Positions 1 through 44,665 of a stretch of DNA of 64,000 bases are shown here, one piece after another. The DNA lies in NCBI GenBank assembly GCA_038496445.1, contig JALMLS010000450.1, positions 62,001 through 126,000 of the forward strand, written 5' to 3'. Below the pieces are notes generated by a model. The model did no database searches, was not told the origin of the DNA, and worked only from the letters and a program-made list of their open reading frames with translations. This DNA comes from Trichosphaerium sp. ATCC 40318 (taxonomy: Eukaryota > Protista > Tubulinea). The translations under genes and the position numbers were made by a program. Position 1 is the stretch's first letter; each line of letters starts with the position of its first letter.

Positions 1-524
1 CTATTAATCCCTTAGGGCTCTACTAGTACCCTGCCAGTGGTAGGTGTAGAATTGTAAGAGACGGTTTATTGTACGAATAAATTGATGAGTCACCGTTAAG
101 TTTTTTGGAAACTCAAACAACACTACAGGCAACCGAGCTCCAACCATGGATGACCAAATAAGAGAAATGTTAAGGACAAACCAGTGGCCTAATCTGCGTT
201 TAGACATAGGTAACGCGAGTGGTCCTACGTTGATGGTTATAGAAGGCCCTTGGAGTTTAGATGGTGCGTTAAAGGGCGTTTTATAATAACTAACAGAAAG
301 AGCTGGTAGGTTCATGCAAAGAGTTAATAGACCTTACAACTGAATCGGAAGGCTTTACTTTCAATTACACAGCGATTGTCATGAAAGATGACTACACCAT
401 CACTTTACAAGGACAAGCTGGGCTAGGTTGTGGATTTTATCATCAAGGCACTTGGGAAAGTGATAAACCTATACAAGAGCTTGAAGGATTCATTAAAGGT
501 GGATACCAAGCTACCTTGAAATAG
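1..524 (+). CDS. 3' part of an intron-containing gene, unknown product (partial)
   Basis: Spliced reading ...MDDQIREMLRTNQWPNLRLDIGNASGPTLMVIEGPWSLDG / SCKELIDLTTESEGFTFNY...GGYQATLK* with a GT..AG intron near 263-309; TAG at 522-524. Confidence 0.55.
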
Positions 525-1046
525 AAAAAAAAGTGTAAATGTCGTTTTCTCTTTTTTTGCTTGTATTCTGAAAAAAAAGTCTTGCCAATGGCACTGGTTA
601 TGCTATGTACAGTATGCTTGAATAAAGTATTGGCCCATTTTAACATTGCTATCTTGTTCATAAGGGTGATACGCTTCCAACACAATATAGAATTCAAAAT
701 GCAATTCCCTAGATAAAAAACAACTTAGACAACCACTTTGTTAAAAACGCACGTGATAATGTCAATAGCAAATGTTTGTTGAAGCTTAAGATACACCTCA
801 AATATTTTAGTATGTAACGAGGTAACAGAGCATGTTAATAGCCAACACCGAAGGCCTCTGCCAAATTGATACGAAAACTGTACGCAAAGACTAACAAAGG
901 CTATCTACTTTAGAACGCAAGCACAATATTACAAGACTACGAAACAGTCAACGATAAGAACCATCACACAATTTCTTATGTATCAAGAGCACGCATCAAC
1001 TTTTCTTAATATTTTATTGTTACAAGAGTCCTCTTGGTATCTACAA

Positions 1047-3180
1047 CTAAGTGAAGCACTGTTGTAACCTGCTTGCTAGCATTCTAAAAACGTTTGAGTA
1101 CAATAAATGTATACACAAAGAAACGAACCTCTGTTTTGAGTACTTTGCTATATGCTTGAACTGATGCCAGTTCCAATCAAAGTTCGGCTCAATAGATGTT
1201 AATATATGAGGCCAATAATGAGCAAGTCCGTATGAACCATACGTTGCTATTTGATCACAAGAAACACGATACCTTTTCACAAGAAAAAAAAAGTTAGCAT
1301 AATATTACCCAAAGAAGTCTTGTACACGGTCCTACCACCATGCCAGTGTCGTTTCTGTTAATACAATAATGGCGTGGTAGGTTACTGATATAATACGGAT
1401 GCGTACCATTGCTCTGTGTGTGATACGCCAAGTTTTATTTTAAGGCTATTCAAAAACAATCTATGAACTTCTTTACGCTGCCAGAAAGGTTGTGAGAACC
1501 TCTCTAATGACCAATGAAAGTTTTTATATATTACAGTAATTGCTTTATTGAATGATCCGTATCTGGTTGTTAGTTAGAGTACGTTAGAAGAACCAAGTGA
1601 AATAAGTGTAAAAAAAATATTAATAGTTACCTCTTTGAAATAATGTTAGCGGTGGGAGAGTCTTTGATGTCTTGAACCTTATCATACCAATCATCTAATG
1701 TCTTTATACCTCTCCTCTCAGCTATGCTGTTTAGATAATTACGTTGATTCAACTCATCATCCCAATGATGACGTGCACTACAAGCTAACATTTAGATAGT
1801 CACCAACTACAAAATATAGCAAGGTGCCTTAACTCCAAAAAACAGGACGTACGGGAATCTCCATTGCTGCCAGTTGTGTCTTGGATATAATCTACCCAAA
1901 CAATTGATCAATGAATCTTTATAGTACAGTCTAATAGTCTTAGCCTGGGTAACATTCAAAGTAGAAAAAAAATGTCAAGAAATAAATGAGATTGCTGCAC
2001 AAATTGTTTGGTTTCAGAGTTTTTTGTTAACATACGTTAATATATCGCTTGCCCCATGCTTAATTACATTTACTTTATTTACATTATACCAGTCATCCAA
2101 ATGTTTCACATTTAGAGTCTGACCAATTTCATTAAAAAGACGTCTCTGACCTTTTAATTTATGATCTTTGAAAGGCCTAAACAAATATCAGAAAGTAATA
2201 TTCTCTGGATATAATAACACGTGGAAACAATTGTTGGTCGTACATATAAGCTTTAGGTGACCAATTAAATCCAGGATACAAGCTCGATAAACACTCTTTC
2301 AAGTCATGATTGTAAATCTCGCTTCGATAAAGGTCAATTGTTTTTTCAGATTTTTTTTTTCCAAGCAACAAAAAGAACACGTACAGTATTCGTCCAGCAC
2401 CTTGTTGTCTAATATCAGCACGATCTATTGATAGCCACTGTTCTAGACTTTTAATACCTAGATTATACCCGACTTGTTCGAATTTCTGGCGTTGATTCTT
2501 TATGCTGTTCAAGTAATTGATTTGGCTCCTTTGAAAAAAATATTACTCCTTTTTTTTTTGACACGTGGTGTCACATAACAAAATTCGTCTTTCACGTGAC
2601 AGCAACAAAATCAAGTCAACATGCGTACCTAAATGATTTTGATTCCCAGTCAAAATTTGGGTAAACTGAGGCAAGACAAGAGCTCAGGAAGCCATCGTAC
2701 TTTGACCTGTTATAAAAAAATCGGTTAAAAGAAACGAAAAGCTGAATACCGCTTTGAGTGCGTTATAAACGAAAATAATGTATACCTAAGCAATCCACCA
2801 GCACCTAGATGCTGTGCATCCGTTTTAACAACGTTTTGCCATTCTCCAAGATGTTTGACCTCAAGTTCTTTCGCAATAGCCTCAATACACTTACGTTGAT
2901 TGCGAACACTCTATACCAGGCGTCAGAGCTATTTACATAACTAATTTAGCTAATTTCGTACCCAAATCTCGTGGTGTACTTCTCTACGCGTATATTTACA
3001 TCGTAGCGATAAGCTCTGGCGCATAATGTTACTAACACAAAATAATCGCTATACAACACTTTCAAGTCAGGGTAACTATCATCTCGGCGTAGTGTTTGGT
3101 ACTGTAATCAACGGACCATTTTGACAAAGTGACGCTGGCAATAAGTCAGTGAACAGATGTGGCCGGACTCCTTGAGTCAT
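1047..3180 (-). CDS. Uncharacterised multi-exon protein with repeated W-rich units (NQR.F...IG..L.IK.LEDWY...YP...W)
   Basis: At least four degenerate repeats across exons (e.g. NQRQKFEQVGYNLGIKSLEQWL..LYPGFNW; WDDELNQRNYLNSIAERRGIKTLDDWY); candidate ATG at 3180. Confidence 0.65.
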
Positions 3181-3457
3181 TAGATTGCAAAAAAATCCTT
3201 CAATTTGGCATTTTGTTTGCTGTACCTGTGTAACGTTATTCGTAACCCTATTTAAGAATAAACAGTGTAAAAAAACTTGTTAGAAATAGATCAATTGTAT
3301 ACTTTTTGTGACATGTGGTCACGGAGGAAAAAACAAACTCTTTGTGTTCGAATTCATTTTATTGTTCAACACATAACCCACGAACCTTACCACGTAATCA
3401 AGCTACCCAATATTGATAGTATTAACCAAGCTCAGGAAGTAAGTGTAGCTCACTGAG

Positions 3458-4091
3458 TTAATACTCTTCATCACAACAATACAAGCATATATATCCTCTG
3501 ATTTCTCTGAAATATCTGAAGTGCGTCTCTTTGCACTCATCGTTGCAAAAAAAGTGGTGAAAGCATTGAGTACACTTTGTAACACATGATTTACAACATT
3601 CCTTACCACACCCAAAACACTCCTTAACGTGATTACCATGTGAGTCACAAAAAAACGCATCACAAACTTGGCAATGTGTTTCAGTGCAAATACTGCATAA
3701 AATGAAATCACACATTTTGCACTTGTAGTTAGGAACACAGCTGGTACAACGAGTGTTTCTACAACCACGACAAGAACCAGGATGCTTATATAATGTAGCA
3801 CAGTCTGAGCAAGTTTGCAGTTTTTGTCTGCCTTGTGCGTTCCTAAGAAGAAAATCGTTTGCTTGTTTTTTTTGCTCTTTGTAAAACATTTGCATTTCTA
3901 ATTGTTGTCTTTGTGCTAGCGCTCGTTGTTGTTGTTTATGAGCTGCTTGTATGTTTGAAAGTTCTCTTTTACACTTAGCATTCATCTCATTAGCTGTGGT
4001 AGGTATTGTAGGGTCTATGAACGGACTTCGCTTTGTTTAAGCAATTAGAGCAATTCTCAACATAAACGACACATACGTATTCATTTGACAT
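3458..4091 (-). CDS. Coiled-coil plus Cys/His-rich (CxxC, B-box-like) zinc-binding protein
   Basis: Short exon MSNEY then a GTATGT..AG intron joins in frame to ORF 3458-3985; more than 10 CxxC/CxxH pairs. Confidence 0.7.
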
Positions 4092-4586
4092 TCTAGATAA
4101 TGAGTTGAGCGAGTTGCGCGGGTAAATAAGATATGAACAGGCAGAATAAGCCACTTCAATTCAAGTTTTTTGGCGCGTTTTTTTTTCATAGAATTAGAGA
4201 CAGATGCATAAAAAAAGAGGCACCGCTGAGCCTTATTTTGACACGACCACCAAAAATATCGTAGAACATCAGCCCATGAAAATAGCAAAAAATGTAATAG
4301 AAACAAAAGCACCACGAAATAAACACATGTTGTTAGAAGGTGAAAAGTAATCAACAACAAAACAAAACCCAAAACCACCAGACGTCTGCAAAACGTGTTA
4401 CTTGCTTACTTACACCAAAACGCTACGGGTTTTTTTTATTTTCCATAAAACTCCCACCATCCATACCGTGATCACCAAAAACCAACACAAAGTGCGAGTA
4501 GTACAAAAGAAAGAAAGCCGTTGATTGGGCTTTTTTTTGTTTTATTGAGAAGTTTTTTTTTTGAAACAAATTTTTTATTATTTTTC

Positions 4587-6880
4587 TTACTTGAAATCGT
4601 ACTTGTCGTACGCATCACTATCGAGGTAATTTGCAGAAAGCATTTTACCAGAGAACCACCTATTATATCACATAAGAAACTACAAGTACATAAAGCCTTT
4701 AAAAAGACCTCAACAAGAAAAAAACAAGCACAAAAAAAAAACTAAAATAAGCTTGAAGCTTTTATATCTTCTCACGCACCTTCCGTTTAGCTGGTTCACT
4801 GCAACCACAGCAGCCTCTTCTACTGCAAATTTTATATATACAAATCCCTTACTGTATTTGTCAACGAAACAATGTACGATAGGTCCGTAATTAGAGCACT
4901 CTTCCTCAACGTCTTCTTTAATATCCTTATCAAAATTTGGATCATCTTCTAGCTCAGGATCAAACATATTCGTAACTACAATACAACGTGTAGGGTTACT
5001 AGACGTAGGAACAAGGGGTTTGGCAGCTTCTAAAGAGAAAAAAAATAAGCTAACGATCCAACACAACGAAAACAAAATCAACGAAAAAAAACAGTCAAAA
5101 CGTACCTCCACCGCTTGCAAGTTTCTGCATGAGAGCCTGTCGTGTAACGCCAGACTCCCCACCCAAGTTATCGTCATCGATATCACCAATAACCGTGCCT
5201 GAGTTCTCATTCACGAGGTTTACCTTTAGAGCGCGTCCAGCAAGTTCTAGACCATTCACCTCAGCCAAAGCTCTTTTTGCTGAGTTGGGGTTTCGAAATT
5301 GAACGTAAGCGTGTCCTTTTGGTACACCACTATCGTCACGAGGCATATTGACAATCTCAATTTCTCCAAAGTGGCAAAAGATATGCTGTACATCTTCTTC
5401 CTTAAGATCCCTGTGAAGGTTACCAACAAAGACACGAGAAGGACCAGCAGTGGTCGTACTAAAAAAAAGACATTAGAGATAAGAAAAAAAACAAAGCAAA
5501 AAAAAAAGTTCGTTTGCTACAAACAACTCGTCACGTGATTGTAAAATAGAAAAAATTACAATAAATAATTGTAGAAAGCTAGTGTCGAAAGAAAGGAAAA
5601 AACAGTGACATGTGCACGTACTTTGAAGAAGCTCTGTTCTTCTCTGCTTGAGAAGCTTGTACCATAACAGTCTTACCCAAAAATTGAGTACCAGAGAGTC
5701 CTAAGGCTTTTTTTACAGAGTCACGATCCTTAAATTCAATATATCCGAAGCTTTGCACAAAAAAAGGTTAGTCCTTAATTCTCTAATGGGATATTAGGTT
5801 CGAAAAAAAAAAAGAGTTTTTGGGCCAGTGTGTTGTGTTATTTGGTTTTTTTTCTTGGAGTTTTTTGTTTTTGTTTTGTTATTTCTTATTTTTTTCGGCC
5901 GTGGATGTTACCTCTGAGCCACAAGTTTCGGTAATTCATTAGCGTTGGATGATCATCTAGTGAAACAAAACTTATATACTGAACGTAAAATTTTTTTTGA
6001 AGCGAACAGTCGCCTTCAAAGAAACTGGCAAAAAAAACAAAAAAAAATAACACTTCAAAAAAACAATTCCTTGATTCTCCGTTTTGAAAACAATAAATCA
6101 AACAGAATAGGCTCTAATTGTAATATATAGTATACTTACCCCTTAGATTTGCCAGTATTACGATCCTTGATAAGCTTCACATCGCGTACACCACCAGCTT
6201 TTTCAAAAAATTCTTTAACGTCTCTATCTCTCGCTTTAAGCGGTAGGTTATATGAGAATACTGTACGGGAATCGCGCTCGCCTTCTCCAATTTTCTCTGC
6301 AAAAAAGCGGTTAGACTTTTTTTTTTGAACACTTCTTCTGTGCTTACCTGTGTCTTTCTTCTCGCCTCTTGATGAACGATCACGGCCTTTATCGCGTTCA
6401 CGGCGGTCATCTCGTCGACGTCTGCGCCTGTCACCTTTGGACCTAGAACGAGATCGGCGTCTTCTTCTGTGCCTATCGCGTGAGCGTGATCTCTTTGAAC
6501 GAGAGCGTGAACGGCGCCTGCGTCGTCGTTTGTCTCTGGAGCGCGATCTTGACCGCGAACGCCGGCGTCGCTTTCTATCGCGATCCGTAGACCTTGAACG
6601 AGAGCTAAACATGAATTTAGTTTACAGATCTAAGCAAAGCGCGTTTTTTAGGTAAAAAAGAGTTGTTAAAGAGGTATTGGGTATAATATAGTAGATTTGG
6701 AGTTTATTGAGGCTATTTGAGTTTTTTCGGTAAAATGAATAAAAATACGTACTCTCTACGCGATCTCTTGCTATCTTTGCTCTCCTTTTTATCTACATCC
6801 ATTGGTTCTGGTTTAGGTTCAGCTTCTGCTTTACGCAGCCCAGCGTCAAGCAACTCATCTACGAGCTGTTCGTCTGTCAT
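4587..6880 (-). CDS. RBM39: RBM39/CAPER-family splicing factor (RS domain, RRM1, RRM2, UHM)
   Basis: RS domain; ERDSRTVFSYNL; SKGFGYIEF; KGHAYVQF; RQALMQKLA; TRCIVVTNMFDP..DIKEDVEEECSNYG..NGRWFSGKML. Confidence 0.93.
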
Positions 6881-7065
6881 TGCAAGTTGGAATGGGAAAG
6901 GATAAATCAATGCGGAATTTTTTAAGCAGCGCAGCTTAAACAGAGAAATCTCTTTTGTTTTGCTGTGAAAACGCGTTGCTACTTAGTACATGAGACGTTG
7001 AGAGGTCTGCTACTGGATAGTGTAAAAAAGGCGACTACAGTTTAACAGCAACTTGTGCGACGGTT

Positions 7066-9315
7066 ATGAAGGTCGCTGTGGTACTTTTGACGTACCTCTG
7101 TATGGTATATTGTGATACGGGGCTGCAAGTACATGGTCTTAATGATTGGAAAGTAGAGCACTTTGTATCAAAGGATAGCATGGAGTTTGGGCGTTCAATG
7201 GTTATTGTACGTGTCATCAAAGATTGTGAACAGTGTTTACATTTCAGTTCCCTTAAATTGCGCTCATTGTAAGCTGTTAGAACCGTGAAACTGGTACTGT
7301 GTATGTTGGCAGTTTTGACTTTCAGGGGTTGTCCCATGCGTCGGGAAATCGTGTGGTATACGCTATCATAGGTGCGATACGTGTATTATCACTGTGACTA
7401 AATTGAGCACTAGACGAGAATAAAGACGCCGTAATAGACAGAGTAATACCCGTTACGCCTACTCTTAGCGTTCCCAATGGTACGCGTAATGAATACCTAA
7501 CCTAGAACGAAACGCCATTTCCCTTACACCACGAGATCATTTTGACACTTTGCAAGGCGTGGCATACTTTAACGGCACACTATACGTTGCTCAAATAGAT
7601 AAAATACTTCGTTATGATGGCATAGACGACTGGGTTGCTCAACCTGCACCGCACAGTTTCTTAACGTACTCACTAAACTCGAAATAGCCGCCCAGGGCTA
7701 AATGTACTGACTTACGCAATAGCCTACTGTTGTACTTAACAATACGTTTATGCCGAGCCTTCAGCAGTACGTATGCAACGTCACTGTAACCTACTTTATC
7801 CAATCAACGTACTCACAAACGTATACTGTAGTCACGGATGGCGTTATATAAGAATAAGTCCGCCTCCTGAAAATAGGCTTTATCTTGCCATTGGCGCAAC
7901 ATGTAGTACGTTAGAGTATTGCTAAAGGTAGTGTATTAATGTCAACGCTATAGATGTTCCTGGTTCAGTTGACCCAGATGATACATGTATTGATTCACCC
8001 AAAGCTCGTATGTGGAGCTTTGACCTAAATGATTTTGGATCTGTATGAGTTTGCTTAGCATCTTTTTTTTTTTTGTTCTTTTTTTTGAGGTCTTACTGTT
8101 TGTTCTTAGCGCAAAGAAGTTGCTCGTGGGATTAGAAATAGTGTAGGGTTCGATTGGCACCCAGAAACAAAGGTACAGCCTATAGAATCAGAGTTGAAGT
8201 ACTGTATTTGCTGACAACAATTTGATAAAAAGCAACTGTATTTTACTGACAACGGACGCGATTATTGGAGATCTAATCCATCTGGAGACTACGTAACTAG
8301 CCCTATTTAATACACTCATTATGTTGTATTAATATTGTTATCCTATGATAGAATACTAGACCTCCTGATGAACTAAATCGAGGTACAACATTTCTTCTTC
8401 AAAAAAAATTTGAAACACCAACTTAATTTTTTTTGTCTTTAGTTCCACTTGATTCGTCAACGACACCATATGATTTTGGATTTCCAAAGTGTTATGGAAA
8501 GGGAATGCCTGATTTGTCATTTAATCCTTCAGGACAATGTGATTTCGCTCAAGATGCAGTACAAGGTACTGTAAAGCATACTCTACGTCCTTTTTACTGA
8601 CTAGCAAAAATAGAGCTTGAACCGCATGTAGCAGCACTTGGCATGAGATTTTACACTGGAGATATGTTCCCAGAGCTAAAGGGAGATATCTTAATAGCAG
8701 AACATGGTTCTTGGAACAGGTAGCATTCGTAATAAACCTCACCTGCAGAAACTAATTTTTTTCTTCAGAAATCCACCTGGTGGTTATCGTGTAACACGTG
8801 TGCGCACCTTTGCAAACGGTTCAACAACCTACGAACCATTTGTAACTGGTTGGTTGAACCTTTCAGTATCTATAAGAGCTTGGGGTAGACCTGCAGATGT
8901 AGAGATATACCATGATGGATCTATACTTGTCAGCGATGAATGGAATGGTATTTATCGTATATACAGAGACAAGCAGGCAACACCAACCCAAGAACCTACA
9001 GGCACTCCAACTCAAGAACCTACAGATGCTCCTACTGAAGAGCCTACAGACACTCCGACACAAGTACCTACAGAAGCACCTACGCAACAGTTTACAACTG
9101 ACCCTCCGCTGACACCAACGGAGGAAACTTCCAAGCCTACGACCAGTACACCGACGATGGAACCTTCGGTTCAACCAACAACTAGTAGTGATGATATAGG
9201 TGATACTACTAGTGTAGGACAAGAAGATACTACTCCTATTTTAGTTGTTGGTATACTGTCATTGGGGCTTACTTTGTTTGTGCTCCTTGCTATACCTGTT
9301 ATACGTTCACTGTGA
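7066..9315 (+). CDS. Secreted/anchored glucose-sorbosone (PQQ-type) dehydrogenase-family beta-propeller with Pro/Thr stalk and C-terminal hydrophobic anchor
   Basis: Signal peptide; spliced motifs PNGVAYFNGTLYVA, HGWRYI, GIRNSVGFDWHP, LYFTDNGRD, PPDELN, PHVAALGMRFYTG, AEHGSWNR, GRPADV; PTQEPT repeats; hydrophobic C-terminus. Confidence 0.88.
8980..9090 (+). repeat. Coding tandem repeat (about 24 bp, PTQEPTxT) forming a mucin-like stalk
   Basis: TPTQEPTG TPTQEPTD APTEEPTD TPTQVPTE APTQ in ORF 8704-9315. Confidence 0.8.
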
Positions 9316-9532
9316 ATAAACCTATGGCTTGAGTACTCAAGTTAACTTACTACCAACATAACGCCTTCTGTAGCACGTGTCACTTGAGCGAACGTTGTGG
9401 TTTAACGAAGGTGTATGCAAGCACATTACCTGCTATACAGTGTAATCAATCATCTTAAAAAAGAAATTCATGCACGTGCTTGTGACTAATCTGGAAAGGT
9501 AAGCTTAACCAAAAAATCAAACTGCCAACAAA

Positions 9533-12186
9533 ATGATCACAGTTGCTGCAAACAAGCAAGAATTAGGATTAGAGGCCGCCAAGTATGTTGCGAATAGAAT
9601 CAGGGCGATTATAAGAGATAAAGGTTAAAAACAAGTATGGATGTCGATAATAAACCTTCTTTCAGGTTCGGCACGCATTATAGTGGCTACGGGAGCGTCA
9701 CAGTTCGAGTTTTTGGACGAATTAGTCAAATTAGACGTCCCTTGGGATAAAGGTTCGTGTTTTCGTCTAGAACATTACTTATAACGTTCAGTCGATGCTT
9801 TTCATCTAGATGAGTACATTGGGATGTCAGATAGTCACAAAGGCACGTTTATTTCCTAAATGACATTCTACTGTATTCAAAAATTAACGACGAGATAGCA
9901 AGTTTTGTAAAATATCTAAAAGAACGCTTATTCTCAAAAGTTAAAGTTCAGTTCAAGTCAGGTTTGTTTATGTACCTTTTTTCCTTTTCTTATATTTTTC
10001 CTGTTTATTGTACCATAAGTAACATTTGTATGTACCTGTTTGATGCAAGTGAAAGTTTTTTCTAGCACGTGCATTGGTTTATAGGCCTAAAAATGCTTTT
10101 TTTGAAGACAAAATCGATTACAACTTATGAGGTCTTTTTGTAGTGAATTACTTGAATGGTATGGCATCTGATCCTGAAAAAGAAACAGTGAGGTACTCAA
10201 AGTTACTTGCTGTTGCTCCTATAGATATTGCATGTATCGGTATTGGCGAGAATGGGCATATTGCTTTCAATGTAAATACCTATTGATTTTTCTTTTTTTT
10301 TGCTCACATCTTTCTCTTTCTTACCTGTGTAGGATCCAGGTATAGCTGACTTTGAAGATAAAAAATTAGTAAATGTAATGAAACTCGATGAAGCTTGTAG
10401 GAAACAACAAGTGGGTACAAATAATCGATAAAAAAAACCTACCTTAAACACTTTCTTCGTCTTTTTAACTTTTTTTCGTTGTAGGCGAAGGATGGTTTCC
10501 TGATCTTGCCTCAGTACCTACACACGCCTTTTCACTCAGCGTACATGCTATAATGAGCGCAAAAGAAATAAGTTGCGTTGTGCCTGATGCCAGAAAAGCG
10601 ACAGCAGTACGAGACGCATTGCTTGGACCGATTTCGAATCTTTGCCCAGCTTCAATATTGAGAAGTCATAACAACTGTCATATTCGATTAGACAAAAACT
10701 CTGCCAAGCTATACAATCAAGGTATAGTTGACAAATCGTCTTGATATTAAAATAAGCCTTACCAATACTACAGCATTAAATAAACAAGTATTAATACCTC
10801 CTGGATTTGTTGACTTGCAAATAAATGGATTTCTTGGTGTTGACTTCTCAAGTCCTACTTTGACACGTGATGATATCATAAAAGCTTGTAAAGGAATTGT
10901 AGATTCAGGTACAAGAACAATTTAACCACACAAAATATCCCAAAGCCTGGTCAGTACTTCTTTTATTTAATTTTTTTTTTTCAGGCACAATCGCTTTTTT
11001 ACCTACCATGATAACTTGCAGCGCTGAAACTTATCGTCGCAACTTGCCTCTATTACAAGAAGTAGCGAGGTATTTACTCCTTTCTTCCTTCAAAAACTAG
11101 CGTTATTCCGTAACACGTGCTAACAGTGTTAGCACTACTGAATGTGGAAAACATATCCTGGGAATTCATTGTGAAGGACCTTTTATATCACCCCTACAAG
11201 GGGCTGTTGGTTGTCATGACCCTAAGTTAACACGCATTGCAGATATTGAGCTTCTAAAAAATATGATTAAATGGTCTAAAGGCTTCATCAAAGGTATTCT
11301 TTTTACGAAAAAACTTCCTCACAAAATAATATACTGCGTAGTTCTTACTGTAGCGGCTGATATCAATGGTGTTGATGAGATCATAAGTCACGCTACAAAC
11401 GAGGGTATTGCTGTAGCATTAGGGCACCATTTAGCTAATTATGACCAGCTAAATAATGCTGTAAAAGCAGGTTAGCCGAAGGGAGTAAAGGAATTAAATT
11501 GTCGCAACTTTTTTTTAGGTGCTAAGTTTATAACACATCTCGGTAATGGTATGCCTGTTCAATACCATAGGCACTACAATCCATTACTTGTTGCTATGGG
11601 TACAGATAATATTTCAGCATCAATAATTGCTGATGGTCATCATTTACCTAAACACGTGATAAAAGCTATACTAAAAAGTATGTGGAATCTTTTTTGTTGA
11701 GCGTTTATTTGATATATAACTCCTTTAGGCATTGATAAACCTTTTCTTGTGAGCGACACAACATCATTAGCAGGTATGTTAATAACTTGGTTTATTTTTT
11801 TGTAGTTTCAAGCCACCACGAAGCTTTGCTTAACATACAAAAAAATAGGTCTGCAACCTGGAGATTATGATCTTTTTGGAACACCTGTGACTCTAACAGG
11901 AGATGGTGCAGTAAGGATGAGAGGAAAAGACACATTTGCAGGTATACTTTGTTGATTTACAATTGAGATTTGTGGGCTTACTTTGAGTACTCTAGGATCA
12001 GCATCAACGCTATTGTCTTGTGCGAATCACATGTTAACTGGTTGTAATGCTTCCTTGGAGGTTGTTATTGATATGGCATTTTACAGACCTTGCGAAATGA
12101 TAAATGTTGATTTTAATACAGTATTGGGTCTCAAAACTGAAACGCCTTTAGCTTGGAGTGAAGACAAAGGCTTTCACCAACAATAA
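9533..12186 (+). CDS. nagB-nagA: Bifunctional glucosamine-6-phosphate deaminase / N-acetylglucosamine-6-phosphate deacetylase (NagB-NagA fusion)
   Basis: NagB: [49 protein letters not shown]. Intron 10722-10773 joins it in frame to NagA: [50 protein letters not shown]. Confidence 0.9.
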
Positions 12187-12391
12187 AATTATCAAGAATA
12201 TATGTCCTACTGGGTGTTATTCTTAATTCCTTTCTTACTTATTTGGCGTGAACTATCTACTATTATGAAGTAATGTATAAAGAGGATGGTTTAACGCAGG
12301 TTTTGTTCATTCTAAAAACACGTGCTAGAAACAGCCTATGACATAATTTATTCAAAGCGACTCGCTAGGATTTTGTTCGACTTTCGTAACT

Positions 12392-12793
12392 TCATGGATT
12401 GAAATTCCTCACGATTGCGCCATGTTCCATGGTATAATGCAACAGCAGGTCACCGCTAATTTTGCACCACTCCTTGTACTCTCCATGATAGTTACCATTT
12501 AAACAGTGATATTGCAAATACATAATGTCATTATAGAGAAGACGCTTTTGCTTTCTTGAAAGTTGACCATGGGTGAAGAAACACTCTATTTCTGTCGCAC
12601 CATCACAATTCCTATCTATAAATACAGTATCCCATCTAATCCACATACCATGCTTTCTAAACTTAGAATCAAACCTTGACGTCGTCGCTGCACGTTTTGA
12701 TAGGAGAGGCCACTTTTTGTATAATTTTTTGTCAAAATCTAAAATATATCTGTGTAGCTCTACGGGGAGGTGTAACAAACCGGATTCCTTCAT
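12392..12793 (-). CDS. Intronless F-box-like protein with short MORN-variant region
   Basis: LLHLPVELHRYIL; LSKRAA..FD...KHGMWIRW shared with 43637-44665; NGNYHGEYKEW. Confidence 0.7.
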   Translation of the reverse strand: MKESGLLHLPVELHRYILDFDKKLYKKWPLLSKRAATTSRFDSKFRKHGMWIRWDTVFIDRNCDGATEIECFFTHGQLSRKQKRLLYNDIMYLQYHCLNGNYHGEYKEWCKISGDLLLHYTMEHGAIVRNFNP

Positions 12794-13860
12794 CTATATT
12801 TATTTAACACATTGTTATTATTTTAGTCACGATACCTCTTTGTTATTTTTGACTTCGTGTCTCGGAGTTAGCGATTTAAGAAACTTTAACATAATTTGAT
12901 GTATTGACGGTTTTGTTTTAGTTGGTTAATTTGTTAATCACGTGTTAGAGAAAAATGACTTAAAGTGATAAGATATGTATTCGAAAATGCTTGTGTACTA
13001 TTTCACGTTTTAATGTTTGGAATCTTATCAACAAGATATTTGTGTATGATTGATTCCTTCTCAAGTACAGCACTACTATGTGCTAGTACTAAAGAGCATC
13101 GAACAACTTTGTTAAAGTTAGATAAAATACAACGAACATGTGCAAATGTCATTGTAGCTATTTAAAAGGACAACCTTTCATTTGACAACCTAACTATGGT
13201 ACGACCATGATAACTATTGTAAACTACTCCACAATCTATGTAAAATCAAGAACATAGATTTGATTAGTGAGGAGCTTAAAAAAACTGAGCTAGTGCTTTT
13301 TTACAAGTATATTTTAGATCAAAATAAATGCCATACACAAATGGTATACTGTATTGATTCTTTACAAGTGCTTAAACAAGGAGAGTATAGCACGTTAAAA
13401 TTATCTAATTTCTTATGCTAAGAAAGTGATAGTTCAATATCTGCATTCACAAAAACAAAAATGGCGAGGGCATTGAGATATCAACATTGCTTCAATTTTT
13501 TTAAGCTTTGAAGTATAGGTTCTAACCAACACAACCGTACAGCCATATATAAAGTACCAACTAATCAAACCTTGCTAAAAGGCTTCAGATAACAATGGCT
13601 AAACACGTGAAATGAAACGTTGCAGTTTTCACATGTGAGTTTATTTCCACTCAGCTGGTTTTTTCATATTATGTACTGTTAGAATGAGAGAACATGTTTT
13701 GATGTTGGCTATTTTTTGGCTTCGGCTAAGCCATCTCAAGATATTAACAGAATATTCTTAAAACGTTGGATTGTTCGGTTCTTTGTCAGCAACAAACGCT
13801 CCTTGTTTACACTAGTTATTGGTAATGAACAATCCAATGATCAACTTTGAAACGTGTACT

Positions 13861-33979: not shown

Positions 33980-35588
33980 ATGGTTAGTGGACACCCGAGG
34001 ATATACAAGAGATTTATAAAGCCCAAAGTGGCGGCACGACAACTACGACACAAACATCCAATAAGAGAGACTAAAGTACTTCCGTTTTACGGTTCATTAC
34101 AGTGTGCATACGTCCATAACTCAAGAACGATGATGATATGCTCTCCTACGCGATTTTACTCGACTGACTACGCCGCGGGTAGTTTTACATCAGATATCAA
34201 AGAGGTTAGACCTCGGTTTTATACGTTTTTGCCCTTTGATTGTATTTCGAAGAAATCACGTGTTCTGCACTTTTTGTCCACCTTTTCTGTAAAAACAGCC
34301 AGACTCTGCTACTATTTTCACCTAAATTGGGAATATGTCACGTGTTTTTACTAAACGAATTTTTTTGTTTTAGGAGGTTTACAAAAACACCACAAAAGTT
34401 TACAAACGGCAGTACTTGAGCGGAAAGAATAAAGGTTTACTCGAAAAGTTTTTTGAAAATGGTCAAGTCGGACTCCAATGCTACGTTGATGATCAAAATA
34501 GAATACAAGGGGAACACAAGAGGTGGCGTGAAAACGGCGATCTTCATAGAAAAGGTTATTGTATTGACAACAAGAGAGAAGGTGTTGAATTTTGGTATGA
34601 GAGCGGCAAACTACATCAGCAAATTTCTTTCAAAAATGATAAAAAAGAAGGTGAATACAAGTCATGGCATAAGAATGGCACTTTGAGTCATCTCGGCTTT
34701 CACAAGAATGATGTGAAAGAAGGTGAATGGAACGAGTGGTATGATAATGGTGAGCCTTATCAACAATTATCTTATGTAAATGGCAAGAAAGAAGGAGAAT
34801 TCAAGCAGTGGTACATAAGTGGACAACTAAACATACAGTGTTATTTCAAGGATGACGCAAAACATGGTGTACAAAAAGAATGGAATGAAAAAGGTCAATT
34901 AAGTCACCAAAGCGCTTTCAAAAACGGCGAAGCATGTGAAGCAAAGTGGTATGAAAATGGACAATTGAGCTCCCACTTTTTATACAACAATGGGGTTAAG
35001 GTACAAGGTAAAACGTGGTATGCAAACGGAAATTTAAAACAGCTCCAAAGTTATAAGAATGATAAGCTTGAAGGCGAAGTAAAAGAATTCTATGATAATG
35101 GTAAACCTCATCACCATTGTTTTTTTAAAAATGATAAGAAAGAAGGTGAATACAAGCAATGGTATGCAAATGGACACTTAAACACACATTGCTATTTCAA
35201 AAATGATAAAAAACATGGTGTTTCCAACCAAATGCATGACAATGGTCAAGTAAGCGTACAATTCCATTTCAAAGACGGCATAAAAGAAGGAGAGTTCAAA
35301 CAATGGTACAAAGGTGGCCAACTATTGGGACAATGTAATTACAAAAATGACAAACAAGAGGGTGAAGCAAAAGAGTGGCATGAAAATGGCCAGTTGAGAT
35401 TACTAAGTTATTTCAAAGATGGCAAGCAACAAGGTGAATACAAAGAGTGGTATGATAATGGCCAGATAAAACTATATTTTGACAAGCAAGAAGGTGATAG
35501 AATAGTAAAACAAAGACGACAAAATAGCCATAAAAGGGGTCATATATACAAACAAGCAATAGTAGTTAGGCAAAGTACTAAAAAATAA
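33980..35588 (+). CDS. MORN-variant (YwqK-like) repeat protein with putative mitochondrial presequence
   Basis: Exon 33980-34204 is spliced by a phase-0 intron (34205-34373, GTTAGA..TAG) in frame to about 14 repeats of KNDKKEGEYKQWYxNGQL. Confidence 0.8.
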
Positions 35589-43636: not shown

Positions 43637-44665
43637 TCAACGCTGAAGCAATTCTCCGTTTTCATTCCAGACTGATATCCCACCATTTACTATTCCATCA
43701 AGTAAAACATAGCTTTCCTTCAAGAGCCCATTTTTGTGCCATTCCGTTTTTTCACCATTTTGTATACCATCAATCCACATACTAGTGGACTTTAGTTGTC
43801 CATTGTCATACCACTCTTTCCCTTTCCCAGTTTGTTTACCATCAATCCATGTACCGGAGGATTTGAGCTGTCCATTCATATACCAAAATCTGCATGCCCC
43901 ATTTTTCTTATCAGCAAGCCATATGCTACAGTACTCAACTTGTCCATTCTCATACCATCCCTTCGCTTCACCGGTTTGCTTGTCATTAAGCCATATACTT
44001 TCAGACTTAAGTTGTCCATTCTCATACCAATCTTTTGTTGCACCATTTTGAAGACCATCAGCCCACATTGTCTCTGCCTCAACCTTACCATTCTCGAACC
44101 ATTCTGTATGTTTACCTATTGGCTTTCCATCAACCCAATTACAATGTACCTTGAGTGAACCATTTTCATTCCACCTGTGGTATTCACCATTTTGTTTACC
44201 ATTAAGAAACATGCAATGGACTTTAAGCTGTCCATTTGAGTGCCAATATTTGTATTCTCCATTTCGTATACCATCAGACATAGTTGTTAGTTTTATAAGT
44301 TGTCCATTCTCTCCCCAAACTTTGAATAAACCATTTTTTTTATTATCCGCCCACATGCCATGGCAGTAAAGTTTTCCACACTTACGCCATGTTTTAGAAT
44401 CACCATTTAGTTTCCCACCTCTTGAATAGTGGAAATGAGCCTTTACCTCTCCGGTTTTGTACCATTGAATCCATGGTCCTTTCTTGTTTAATGCTTCATC
44501 AAAATGTGTATCGAGTGCTGCTCTTTTTGACAATGTATGGAGCTTTGTAAACGCTTCAATGTGGGATGCAGATATCCGCGTTAGAATTTCACATGGGAGA
44601 TCCAGCAAGGTCACAGACGGCATGTTCTGTTTTTTTAATTGGAGTTTTTTACTAGCCGAAGACAT
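43637..44665 (-). CDS. Intronless F-box-like protein with MORN-variant repeats
   Basis: LLDLPCEILTRI followed by about 11 repeats of W.DGKQNG..KEWYENGQLK. Confidence 0.85.
   Translation of the reverse strand: MSSASKKLQLKKQNMPSVTLLDLPCEILTRISASHIEAFTKLHTLSKRAALDTHFDEALNKKGPWIQWYKTGEVKAHFHYSRGGKLNGDSKTWRKCGKLYCHGMWADNKKNGLFKVWGENGQLIKLTTMSDGIRNGEYKYWHSNGQLKVHCMFLNGKQNGEYHRWNENGSLKVHCNWVDGKPIGKHTEWFENGKVEAETMWADGLQNGATKDWYENGQLKSESIWLNDKQTGEAKGWYENGQVEYCSIWLADKKNGACRFWYMNGQLKSSGTWIDGKQTGKGKEWYDNGQLKSTSMWIDGIQNGEKTEWHKNGLLKESYVLLDGIVNGGISVWNENGELLQR

Follow-up and report, generated by a model that had tools for sequence, protein, structure and literature searches.

The window analysed here is a 64,000-nt stretch of the Trichosphaerium sp. 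ATCC 40318 assembly (contig JALMLS010000450.1, positions 62,001 to 126,000 of the forward strand), and its subject is a gene at 9533-12186 (+) in which a NagB domain (glucosamine-6-phosphate deaminase type) is followed, in the same reading frame, by a NagA domain (N-acetylglucosamine-6-phosphate deacetylase type). Quite probably this is a nuclear, expressed and intronised amoeba gene of bacterial origin that encodes a bifunctional NagB-NagA enzyme and has two RNA outputs. The transfer had been flagged before: the gene is very likely the one entered as a candidate in the transfer table of Tekle et al. 2023 (PMC10521059) under TRSP27695.t1, ‘glucosamine-6-phosphate deaminase’, with an Alien Index of 119.3, 14 introns, Aquiflexum balticum as donor and the remark ‘not detected in transcriptome’. 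It is flagged in this supplementary table as a deaminase only; the fusion, the reduction of NagA to its catalytic barrel, the expression and the short isoform are not flagged there. The same genome is also reported to hold an ordinary eukaryotic GNPDA, TRSP10283.t1 (PMC10521059), so that the transferred gene is an addition and not a replacement.

Gene structure and transcripts

Joining the exons at GT/GC..AG sites over 9000-12800 gave a model of 15 exons with a 1737-nt coding sequence and 578 residues. NagB occupies residues 1-246, complete and aligned end to end, and NagA residues 247-578, with a linker of 9 residues between NagB and the short NagA. The NagA half starts at the PGF(V/I)D(L/V)Q(I/L)NG strand and comprises the catalytic barrel only; it lacks an ATG of its own, as proposed in a first-pass annotation made from the sequence alone, the first one in its frame coding for the internal M300. 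The 14 introns measure 39-182 nt (genome mean 75 nt; PMC10521059), 13 of them being GT-AG and the third GC-AG, and the GC content of the gene stretch is 36-39%, like that of the remaining window (37.69% for the genome; PMC10521059). Twelve of the 14 introns (9624-11995) lie in phase 1 at AG|G, which fits insertion at proto-splice sites of a formerly intronless gene.

RNA contigs of four public runs (X1-X4) were aligned to 9400-12300 (2901 letters), and all 14 splice joints were seen at the predicted sites, so the heavy intronisation noted at first pass is real. The 5' end of the mRNA was placed at 9524, where contigs of X2 and X3 start and where template-switch-oligo remnants directly precede this position in two contigs (in X2 with the letters GGTATCAACGCAGAGTACGGGG); this leaves a 5' untranslated region of 9 nt (9524-9532) and makes the ATG at 9533 the first ATG of the message. 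In the NagB half, exon 1 (9533-9623), with the start codon, is joined to the next at 9621->9664 (cut +2, GT..AG) in X1, X2, and X3; exon 2 (9666-9752) carries the ATGASQ loop and is followed by a 39-nt intron confirmed in three runs; exon 3 (9792-9842) holds FHLDEY with the Asp72 equivalent. The GC-AG intron 3 (9843-9898) appears in both X2 and X3 as a 56-nt skip, 2 letters being ambiguous, and only the +2 cut keeps the frame. Exons 4 (9899-9961), 5 (10144-10271), 6 (10333-10414), and 7 (10485-10721) complete NagB. The NagA half begins with exon 8 (10774-10908; Q-x-N site) and continues through exons 9 (10985-11069), 10 (11133-11293; HCEGPF with the Glu131 and GCHDP with the His143 equivalent), 11 (11342-11470; LGHH, His195 equivalent), 12 (11519-11677; equivalents of His216/Asn219 in THLGNG, Arg227 in RH, and His251 in ADGHH), 13 (11729-11773; LVSD, Asp273 equivalent), and 14 (11849-11941) to exon 15 (11996-12186), which codes for the C-terminus and ends with the stop codon TAA at 12184-12186. 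These exons are given by the model and the RNA alike, and exons 3, 8, and 10 to 13 also by residue alignment. The 3' untranslated region of the long fusion mRNA spans 12187-12241, the contigs ending at 12241 (X2) and 12238 (X4).

The two halves meet at intron 7 (10722-10773; 52 nt, GT..AG, phase 1). Exon 7 is free of stops at its ...KLYNQ end, and removal of the intron joins it in frame to NagA. A 1597-nt contig of X2 runs from exon 4 through exon 15 to 12241 with intron 7 spliced out, and crosses the junction 10719->10772 with 236 and 132 flanking letters. NagB and NagA stand in one frame on one mRNA, which bears out both the single fused gene and the in-frame 52-nt intron of the first-pass annotation.

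In contigs of X1, X3, and X4, intron 7 is retained, and all of them end at 10781-10786 (X3 at 10781, X1 and X4 at 10786), a candidate proximal cleavage site with CA at 10785-10786; X2 holds the spliced form only. Retention of any other intron was not seen in the four runs. The X3 contig (812 nt) extends from 9524 to 10781 with introns 1-6 removed and intron 7 kept. Reading through intron 7 gives ...NQGIVDKSS*, with an in-frame TGA at 10742-10744, and the likely product is therefore a NagB of 253 residues without NagA, the usual size of standalone bacterial NagB. The stop is followed by ATTAAA (10746-10751), which may serve the short form as its poly(A) signal; the contigs end 30-35 nt farther on. 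Depth in X3 was 9.9 for the short form vs. 0-4 over the NagA exons (zero from 10855 to 11727), and in X1, a run with a different organism label and 3 differences per 224 nt (2 synonymous), it was zero over all NagA exons. Two separate transcripts had been named at first pass as the finding that would speak against a single fused gene: a NagB-only RNA form that keeps intron 7 is seen besides the fusion mRNA, and a NagA-only transcript was not seen in the four runs, where the sole internal 5' end, a template-switch remnant at 11908 (X4), resembles a truncated cDNA. Selective retention of intron 7 in three of four runs is the newly found element of the locus and may mark a switch at the junction intron.

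We regard a real NagB-only mRNA as likely, presumably polyadenylated at 10786. It is conceivable, though on balance doubtful, that the fusion protein is the sole real product and that the contigs retaining intron 7 represent precursors still to be fully spliced, or cDNAs from internal priming on the A-rich AAATAAACAA (10778-10787). The contig ends at 10781-10786 do fall on this stretch, where oligo-dT could have annealed, and X2, which shows the spliced form only, is in line with it. Two further points count against a genuine short form, namely that the RNA basis consists of assembled contigs from small libraries, and that poly(A) letters were found in the contigs neither at the proximal nor at the distal end (12238-12241); as the distal end of the fusion mRNA equally lacks them, their absence is uninformative either way. 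Internal priming, however, would truncate spliced molecules just as well, and all three short contigs keep intron 7. The restriction of retention to this one intron across all runs, the depth profiles of X3 and X1, and a stop codon and ATTAAA in the expected places likewise argue for the NagB-only mRNA.

Relatives and origin of the fusion

Exon 7 was searched against 1.84 billion representative proteins, and the matches were compared locally with the model. The search returned 1092 relatives; no record of the window's protein itself came up in the representative library, the best match there being 63% identical. Among the fetched proteins, 92 are NagB->NagA fusions, and an ESM Atlas cluster with 87 Bacteroidota members has the same architecture. 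The fusion is thus not special to this organism: it has several eukaryote-like carriers and arose repeatedly in bacteria. The architecture is widespread in databases but unstudied, and literature searches yielded no paper on a NagB-NagA fusion or on a barrel-only NagA. Existing records name the fusions by one domain only (‘glucosamine-6-phosphate deaminase’, ‘6-phosphogluconolactonase’).

The same architecture and linker length, at 43-52% identity, are found in a set of eukaryote-like fusions, i.e., P0017 (GCA_022702875.1; 582 residues, 52% identical over 558 residues), the P0014 group (GCA_029980185.1), EukProt g535.t1, P0156 (45%), and P0005 (43%). The P0017 gene is an uninterrupted open reading frame (ORF) on a contig of 37% GC and has flanks free of ORFs, and the P0014 gene has three introns, compared with 14 in the window gene; one P0014-group member lies on a 103-kb gene-poor contig. 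The second intron of the P0014 gene (locus L005) sits at the same codon and in the same phase as intron 13 of the window gene, which is suggestive of a common history, although parallel gain is possible at this conserved proto-splice site (GCA|GG). None of these fusions has an intron at the domain junction, unlike the window gene with its intron 7, and an origin of intron 7 as an intronised intercistronic spacer was judged unlikely because the junction is uninterrupted in these relatives. In P0005 (L011:6001-9069, 1022 residues), an NAD-dependent epimerase/3-beta-hydroxysteroid dehydrogenase of the short-chain dehydrogenase/reductase type is added to the fusion as a third domain; the P0005 gene lies on a 61%-GC metagenome contig and adjoins a Snf7-domain gene.

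Taken separately, the NagB half shows 59-61% identity to bacterial NagB proteins that stand alone (~250 residues; Maribellus, Mariniphaga, Draconibacterium, KSB1) and 26% to E. coli NagB, while the NagA half is 41-47% identical to standalone bacterial short NagA of 324-350 residues and 29% to E. coli NagA. The truncated NagA is a free-standing bacterial class of 324-350 residues and not the outcome of decay after fusion. Relatives, chiefly P0017, served for the family, PDB, and fold tests, and the gene model itself for the residue checks. Among solved chains, the P0017 NagB half matched B. subtilis NagB best (PDB 2BKV/2BKX; monomeric, non-allosteric, ~240-250 residues; E 1.6e-28), at only ~33% identity and with NEP in place of the NDP of the subfamily, vs. 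E 4e-13 for human GNPDA1. Eukaryotic GNPDA1/2 and AMDHD2 (human 1NE7, 7NUT) and fungal NAG1/DAC1 perform the same two reactions from separate genes. GNPDA belongs to the hexameric type known from E. coli, and the P0017 NagA half is equally far from AMDHD2 and from bacterial NagAs (about 1e-26 to 1e-28), AMDHD2 being no closer than the latter. By these comparisons, both halves are bacterial in type, unlike ordinary eukaryotic GNPDA/AMDHD2, and the solved-chain matches and identity contrasts rule out that they are ordinary eukaryotic orthologues.

The trees agree with this placement. The model falls inside a starred bacterial NagB clade in the NagB tree and inside a starred short-NagA clade (100/98) in the NagA tree, and the bacterial origin proposed at first pass is upheld for each half. 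In the concatenated tree, all eukaryote-like short-linker fusions form one group with the window's protein (82/92). This group belongs to a starred clade of 23 rows that also holds pairs from Planctomycetota, Bacteroidota, Victivallaceae, and Anaerolineales. The nearest bacterial neighbours there are the fused P0153 (45% identical to the model over its full length) and P0154 (43%) together with nagB-nagA(short) gene pairs (Natronogracilivirga saccharolytica and metagenome-assembled genomes of Pirellulales, Phycisphaerales, Rikenellaceae, Victivallaceae, and Anaerolineales), which have the same NagB subfamily and a barrel-only NagA but are mostly two cistrons split by a stop, with a gap of 0-45 nt. 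Being nested among bacterial sequences, far from eukaryotic orthologues, intron-bearing and spliced, the gene has the features of one acquired by horizontal transfer from bacteria; the direction and the number of transfers are what we infer from this picture.

At least three separate bacterial fusion events are visible, namely P0153/P0154 (sister to a Phycisphaerales pair, 100/99), the Cyclobacteriaceae, and P0234/P0236. The Cyclobacteriaceae proteins (Aquiflexum balticum, Cyclobacterium marinum, Cecembia lonarensis; ~625 residues), annotated as 6-phosphogluconolactonase or glucosamine-6-phosphate deaminase, share the domain order, the …SQ loop and AFNDP with the window's protein and are 37-40% identical to it over both halves. 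Unlike the window gene, they have a full-length NagA, beta-sandwich strands at both termini included, a spacer of 40-53 residues and no introns; they form a separate clade, their fusion being an independent event.

Gene pairs were scanned in one genome per bacterial species, and the best 80 loci were kept. In 28 of these 80, nagA lies directly downstream of nagB, several times with a single in-frame stop between them; two are truly fused, both from Cyclobacteriaceae, and in 49 nagA was not found directly downstream. The two genes share a frame in 20 of 29 bacterial pairs, a share to be read with the locus ranking in mind, which favours long single-frame matches. The Natronogracilivirga nagB is followed by the short nagA at a distance of 35 bp. 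In five loci from bacterial species genomes (L015, L016, L018, L020, and L021), a lone stop codon separates nagB from an in-frame nagA, so that a single substitution would fuse them. A giant virus as vector was considered as well: the scan of viral contigs gave two NagB-only matches and no fusion, a weak negative since the patterns came from the NagB half only.

The ancestor would have been a bacterial nagB closely linked to a short nagA, or else a form in which the two were already fused, with the introns added after transfer. Of the sequence of events suggested at first pass, in which a pair was acquired and then fused, the bacterial pair type stands, and ‘fused after transfer’ is inseparable from ‘transferred already fused’ because adjacent nagB-short nagA genes, some one stop apart, are common in bacteria. 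In its strict form, the former would mean that the fusion was made independently in the amoeba lineage, after it had gained a separate bacterial pair of its own. We consider this unlikely. The abundance of pairs one stop codon from fusion and the repeated occurrence of fusion make it plausible, and the model stands apart from the P0017 group in trees of the single domains; against it are the joint group of the concatenated tree, the approximately unbiased (AU) tests, in which a single eukaryote-like clade was not rejected (p 0.116 and 0.296), the intron position and phase common to the window gene and the L005 relative, and the similar linker length across the eukaryote-like group.

Family assignment, catalytic residues and substrate

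Single exons are too short for Pfam, which gave two weak, sub-threshold pieces of Glucosamine_iso only (exon 5, E 0.0073; exon 7, E 0.0011). In the relatives, Glucosamine_iso (PF01182) was found with 63.3 bits in P0017 (cut-off 27, profile positions 3-222) and 73.2 bits in P0156, and Amidohydro_1 (PF01979) was missed or barely passed (26-30 bits). As Pfam barely detects the short NagA, searches by domain architecture under-report the fusion. The best-scoring NCBIfam families are nagB and nagA for the respective halves, ahead of galactosamine-6-phosphate isomerase. The NagB halves also match positions 33-273 of NF002557 (PRK02122, a 653-residue profile), a long bacterial protein with a NagB-like N-terminal part, all scores being far under its cut-off of 384; its second domain is presumably an unrelated LmbE/PIG-L-type deacetylase.

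Alignments to solved NagA chains begin around residue 52-56 (up to 70) of those chains, and in E. coli NagA, ~50 residues at the N-terminus and most of the ~30 at the C-terminus are without an equivalent in the model. The (beta/alpha)8 barrel is present and the beta-sandwich of solved NagAs is missing, in agreement with the first-pass observation that N-terminal strands are absent from a NagA half with its motifs intact; all the motifs named there are present. The AlphaFold model of P0017 has a predicted local distance difference test (pLDDT) score of 88.9 and a predicted template modelling (pTM) score of 0.68. Its template modelling scores (by target) are 0.72-0.76 to solved NagA chains and 0.88 to B. 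subtilis NagB, each domain being matched separately; a solved chain with both domains was not matched by this model. Given the pTM of 0.68 and a low-confidence linker, a fixed interdomain arrangement is not predicted for this 52%-identical relative, and the substrate channelling suggested at first pass gains no fixed interface from it. Channelling and a use of prey sugars, the other role suggested there, would be hypothetical functions.

In the NagB half, the equivalents of D72, H143, and K208 are kept, and D141N and E148D are changes that the model has in common with every member of the subfamily, when measured against the catalytic residues of E. coli NagB (Asp72, Asp141, His143, Glu148, Lys208); B. 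subtilis NagB presumably also has N at the Asp141 position. The ATGASQ and AFNDP motifs, singled out at first pass as unusual, are both present, but they are common to the whole bacterial subfamily of this NagB and are therefore subfamily signatures, not a peculiarity of the amoeba gene. In the NagA half, the equivalents of Q59, N61, E131, H143, H195, H216, N219, R227, H251, and D273 are identical in all ten cases. Nine of these (Q59, N61, E131, H143, H195, H216, H251, D273, R227) are metal ligands and catalytic residues of the mononuclear class, as reported by Hall et al. 2007. E. coli NagA (PDB 2P50, 1YMY), a member of this class, has Q-x-N for H-x-H as here, and its metal, catalytic, and phosphate-binding residues align with the window's protein, from which it differs by its low identity and by the N- and C-terminal beta-sandwich domain.

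Judged from these residues, the NagA half would take the acetyl group off N-acetylglucosamine-6-phosphate (GlcNAc-6-P) with a single divalent metal at the Glu131/His195/His216 equivalents and the Asp273 equivalent as base, and the NagB half would convert the resulting glucosamine-6-phosphate to fructose-6-phosphate and ammonium. Several findings tell against this assignment. The nagB (TIGR00502) scores of P0017, P0156, P0153, and the standalone Maribellus and Natronogracilivirga NagB reach 117.5-155.5 bits vs. an equivalog cut-off of 236.9, and the nagA (TIGR00221) scores are 185.8 for P0017, 128.9 for P0156, 174.9 for P0153, and 172.9 for the standalone short NagA P0248 vs. a cut-off of 225.65 (224.0 for the Cyclobacteriaceae fusion with full NagA). 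In bacteria, the genes alongside often code for GFO/IDH/MocA oxidoreductases and sodium-solute transporters instead of being classical nag genes, hence the true substrate could be another N-acetyl-amino-sugar phosphate, and the literature searches found no enzyme assay for the subfamily. A different substrate pair, such as N-acetylgalactosamine-6-phosphate/galactosamine-6-phosphate or another N-acyl-amino-sugar phosphate, with no GlcNAc catabolism, would also accommodate the E148D and D141N changes of NagB and the ordinary GNPDA reported from the same genome. We hold such a pair to be improbable, as nagA and nagB are the best NCBIfam families and the NagA residues checked for binding of substrate and phosphate are all conserved.

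Two probable RNA outputs and the neighbourhood

With GlcNAc-6-P as the putative substrate, splicing of intron 7 would yield the 578-residue fusion, and its retention would lead to the stop codon, cleavage near 10786 and the 253-residue NagB alone. We tentatively go one step further. Intron 7, lying on the former boundary of two bacterial cistrons, may act as a switch that gives a bifunctional deaminase-deacetylase when spliced, and deaminase alone when retained and followed by cleavage after ATTAAA; the amoeba might thereby have rebuilt, by eukaryotic RNA processing, the two products of the operon in adjustable ratio from one locus. If true, alternative RNA processing replaces polycistronic expression for a transferred pathway. 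The case traces a bacterial operon pair to a eukaryotic gene, through the linked pair, repeated bacterial fusion, a eukaryotic fused group and the 14 introns gained here. It also draws attention to an uncharacterised NagA class made up of the catalytic barrel only, which is nearly always found beside or fused to one NagB subfamily, suggesting a physical working unit.

Bacterial contamination of the assembly, suggested by the bacterial best database matches, can practically be dismissed and is ruled out by the gene model and the spliced RNA, the 14 spliceosomal introns all being removed in RNA, the GC content being that of the rest of the window, and the flanking genes being eukaryotic and intron-bearing.

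Upstream of the NagB-NagA gene, at ~7000-9315 (+), lies a multi-exon gene resembling a PQQ (pyrroloquinoline quinone)-dependent sugar dehydrogenase (GSDH exon 8601-8720, E 9.6e-4; last exon 8704-9315), whose product carries at its end a mucin-like stalk rich in Thr and Pro, together with a C-terminal membrane anchor. The GSDH-like exon is in keeping with TRSP27694.t1, the gene preceding TRSP27695.t1, tabled as ‘PQQ-dependent sugar dehydrogenase’ and likewise a transfer candidate from Bacteroidota (PMC10521059). The two adjacent genes are both bacterial-looking and point to the same phylum. Farther downstream, two long single-exon ORFs of WYENGQLK...G.K.GE-like repeats (34416-35588, +; 43637-44665, -) resemble MORN-variant/YwqK-antitoxin-like repeat proteins, which are tabled with bacterial best hits (PMC10521059).

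The palindrome-containing motif GCACGTG occurs 19 times in the window vs. 4.05 expected (0 of 100 shuffles reached 19), and CACGTG 58 times. Copies near the gene lie at 9373-9379, 9472-9479, 10065-10072, 11114-11120, and 12319-12325, two of them 45-150 nt upstream of the mRNA start, one within intron 4, which is unusually long, and another ~80 nt beyond the 3' end. GCACGTG is possibly a regulatory element in wide use in this genome.

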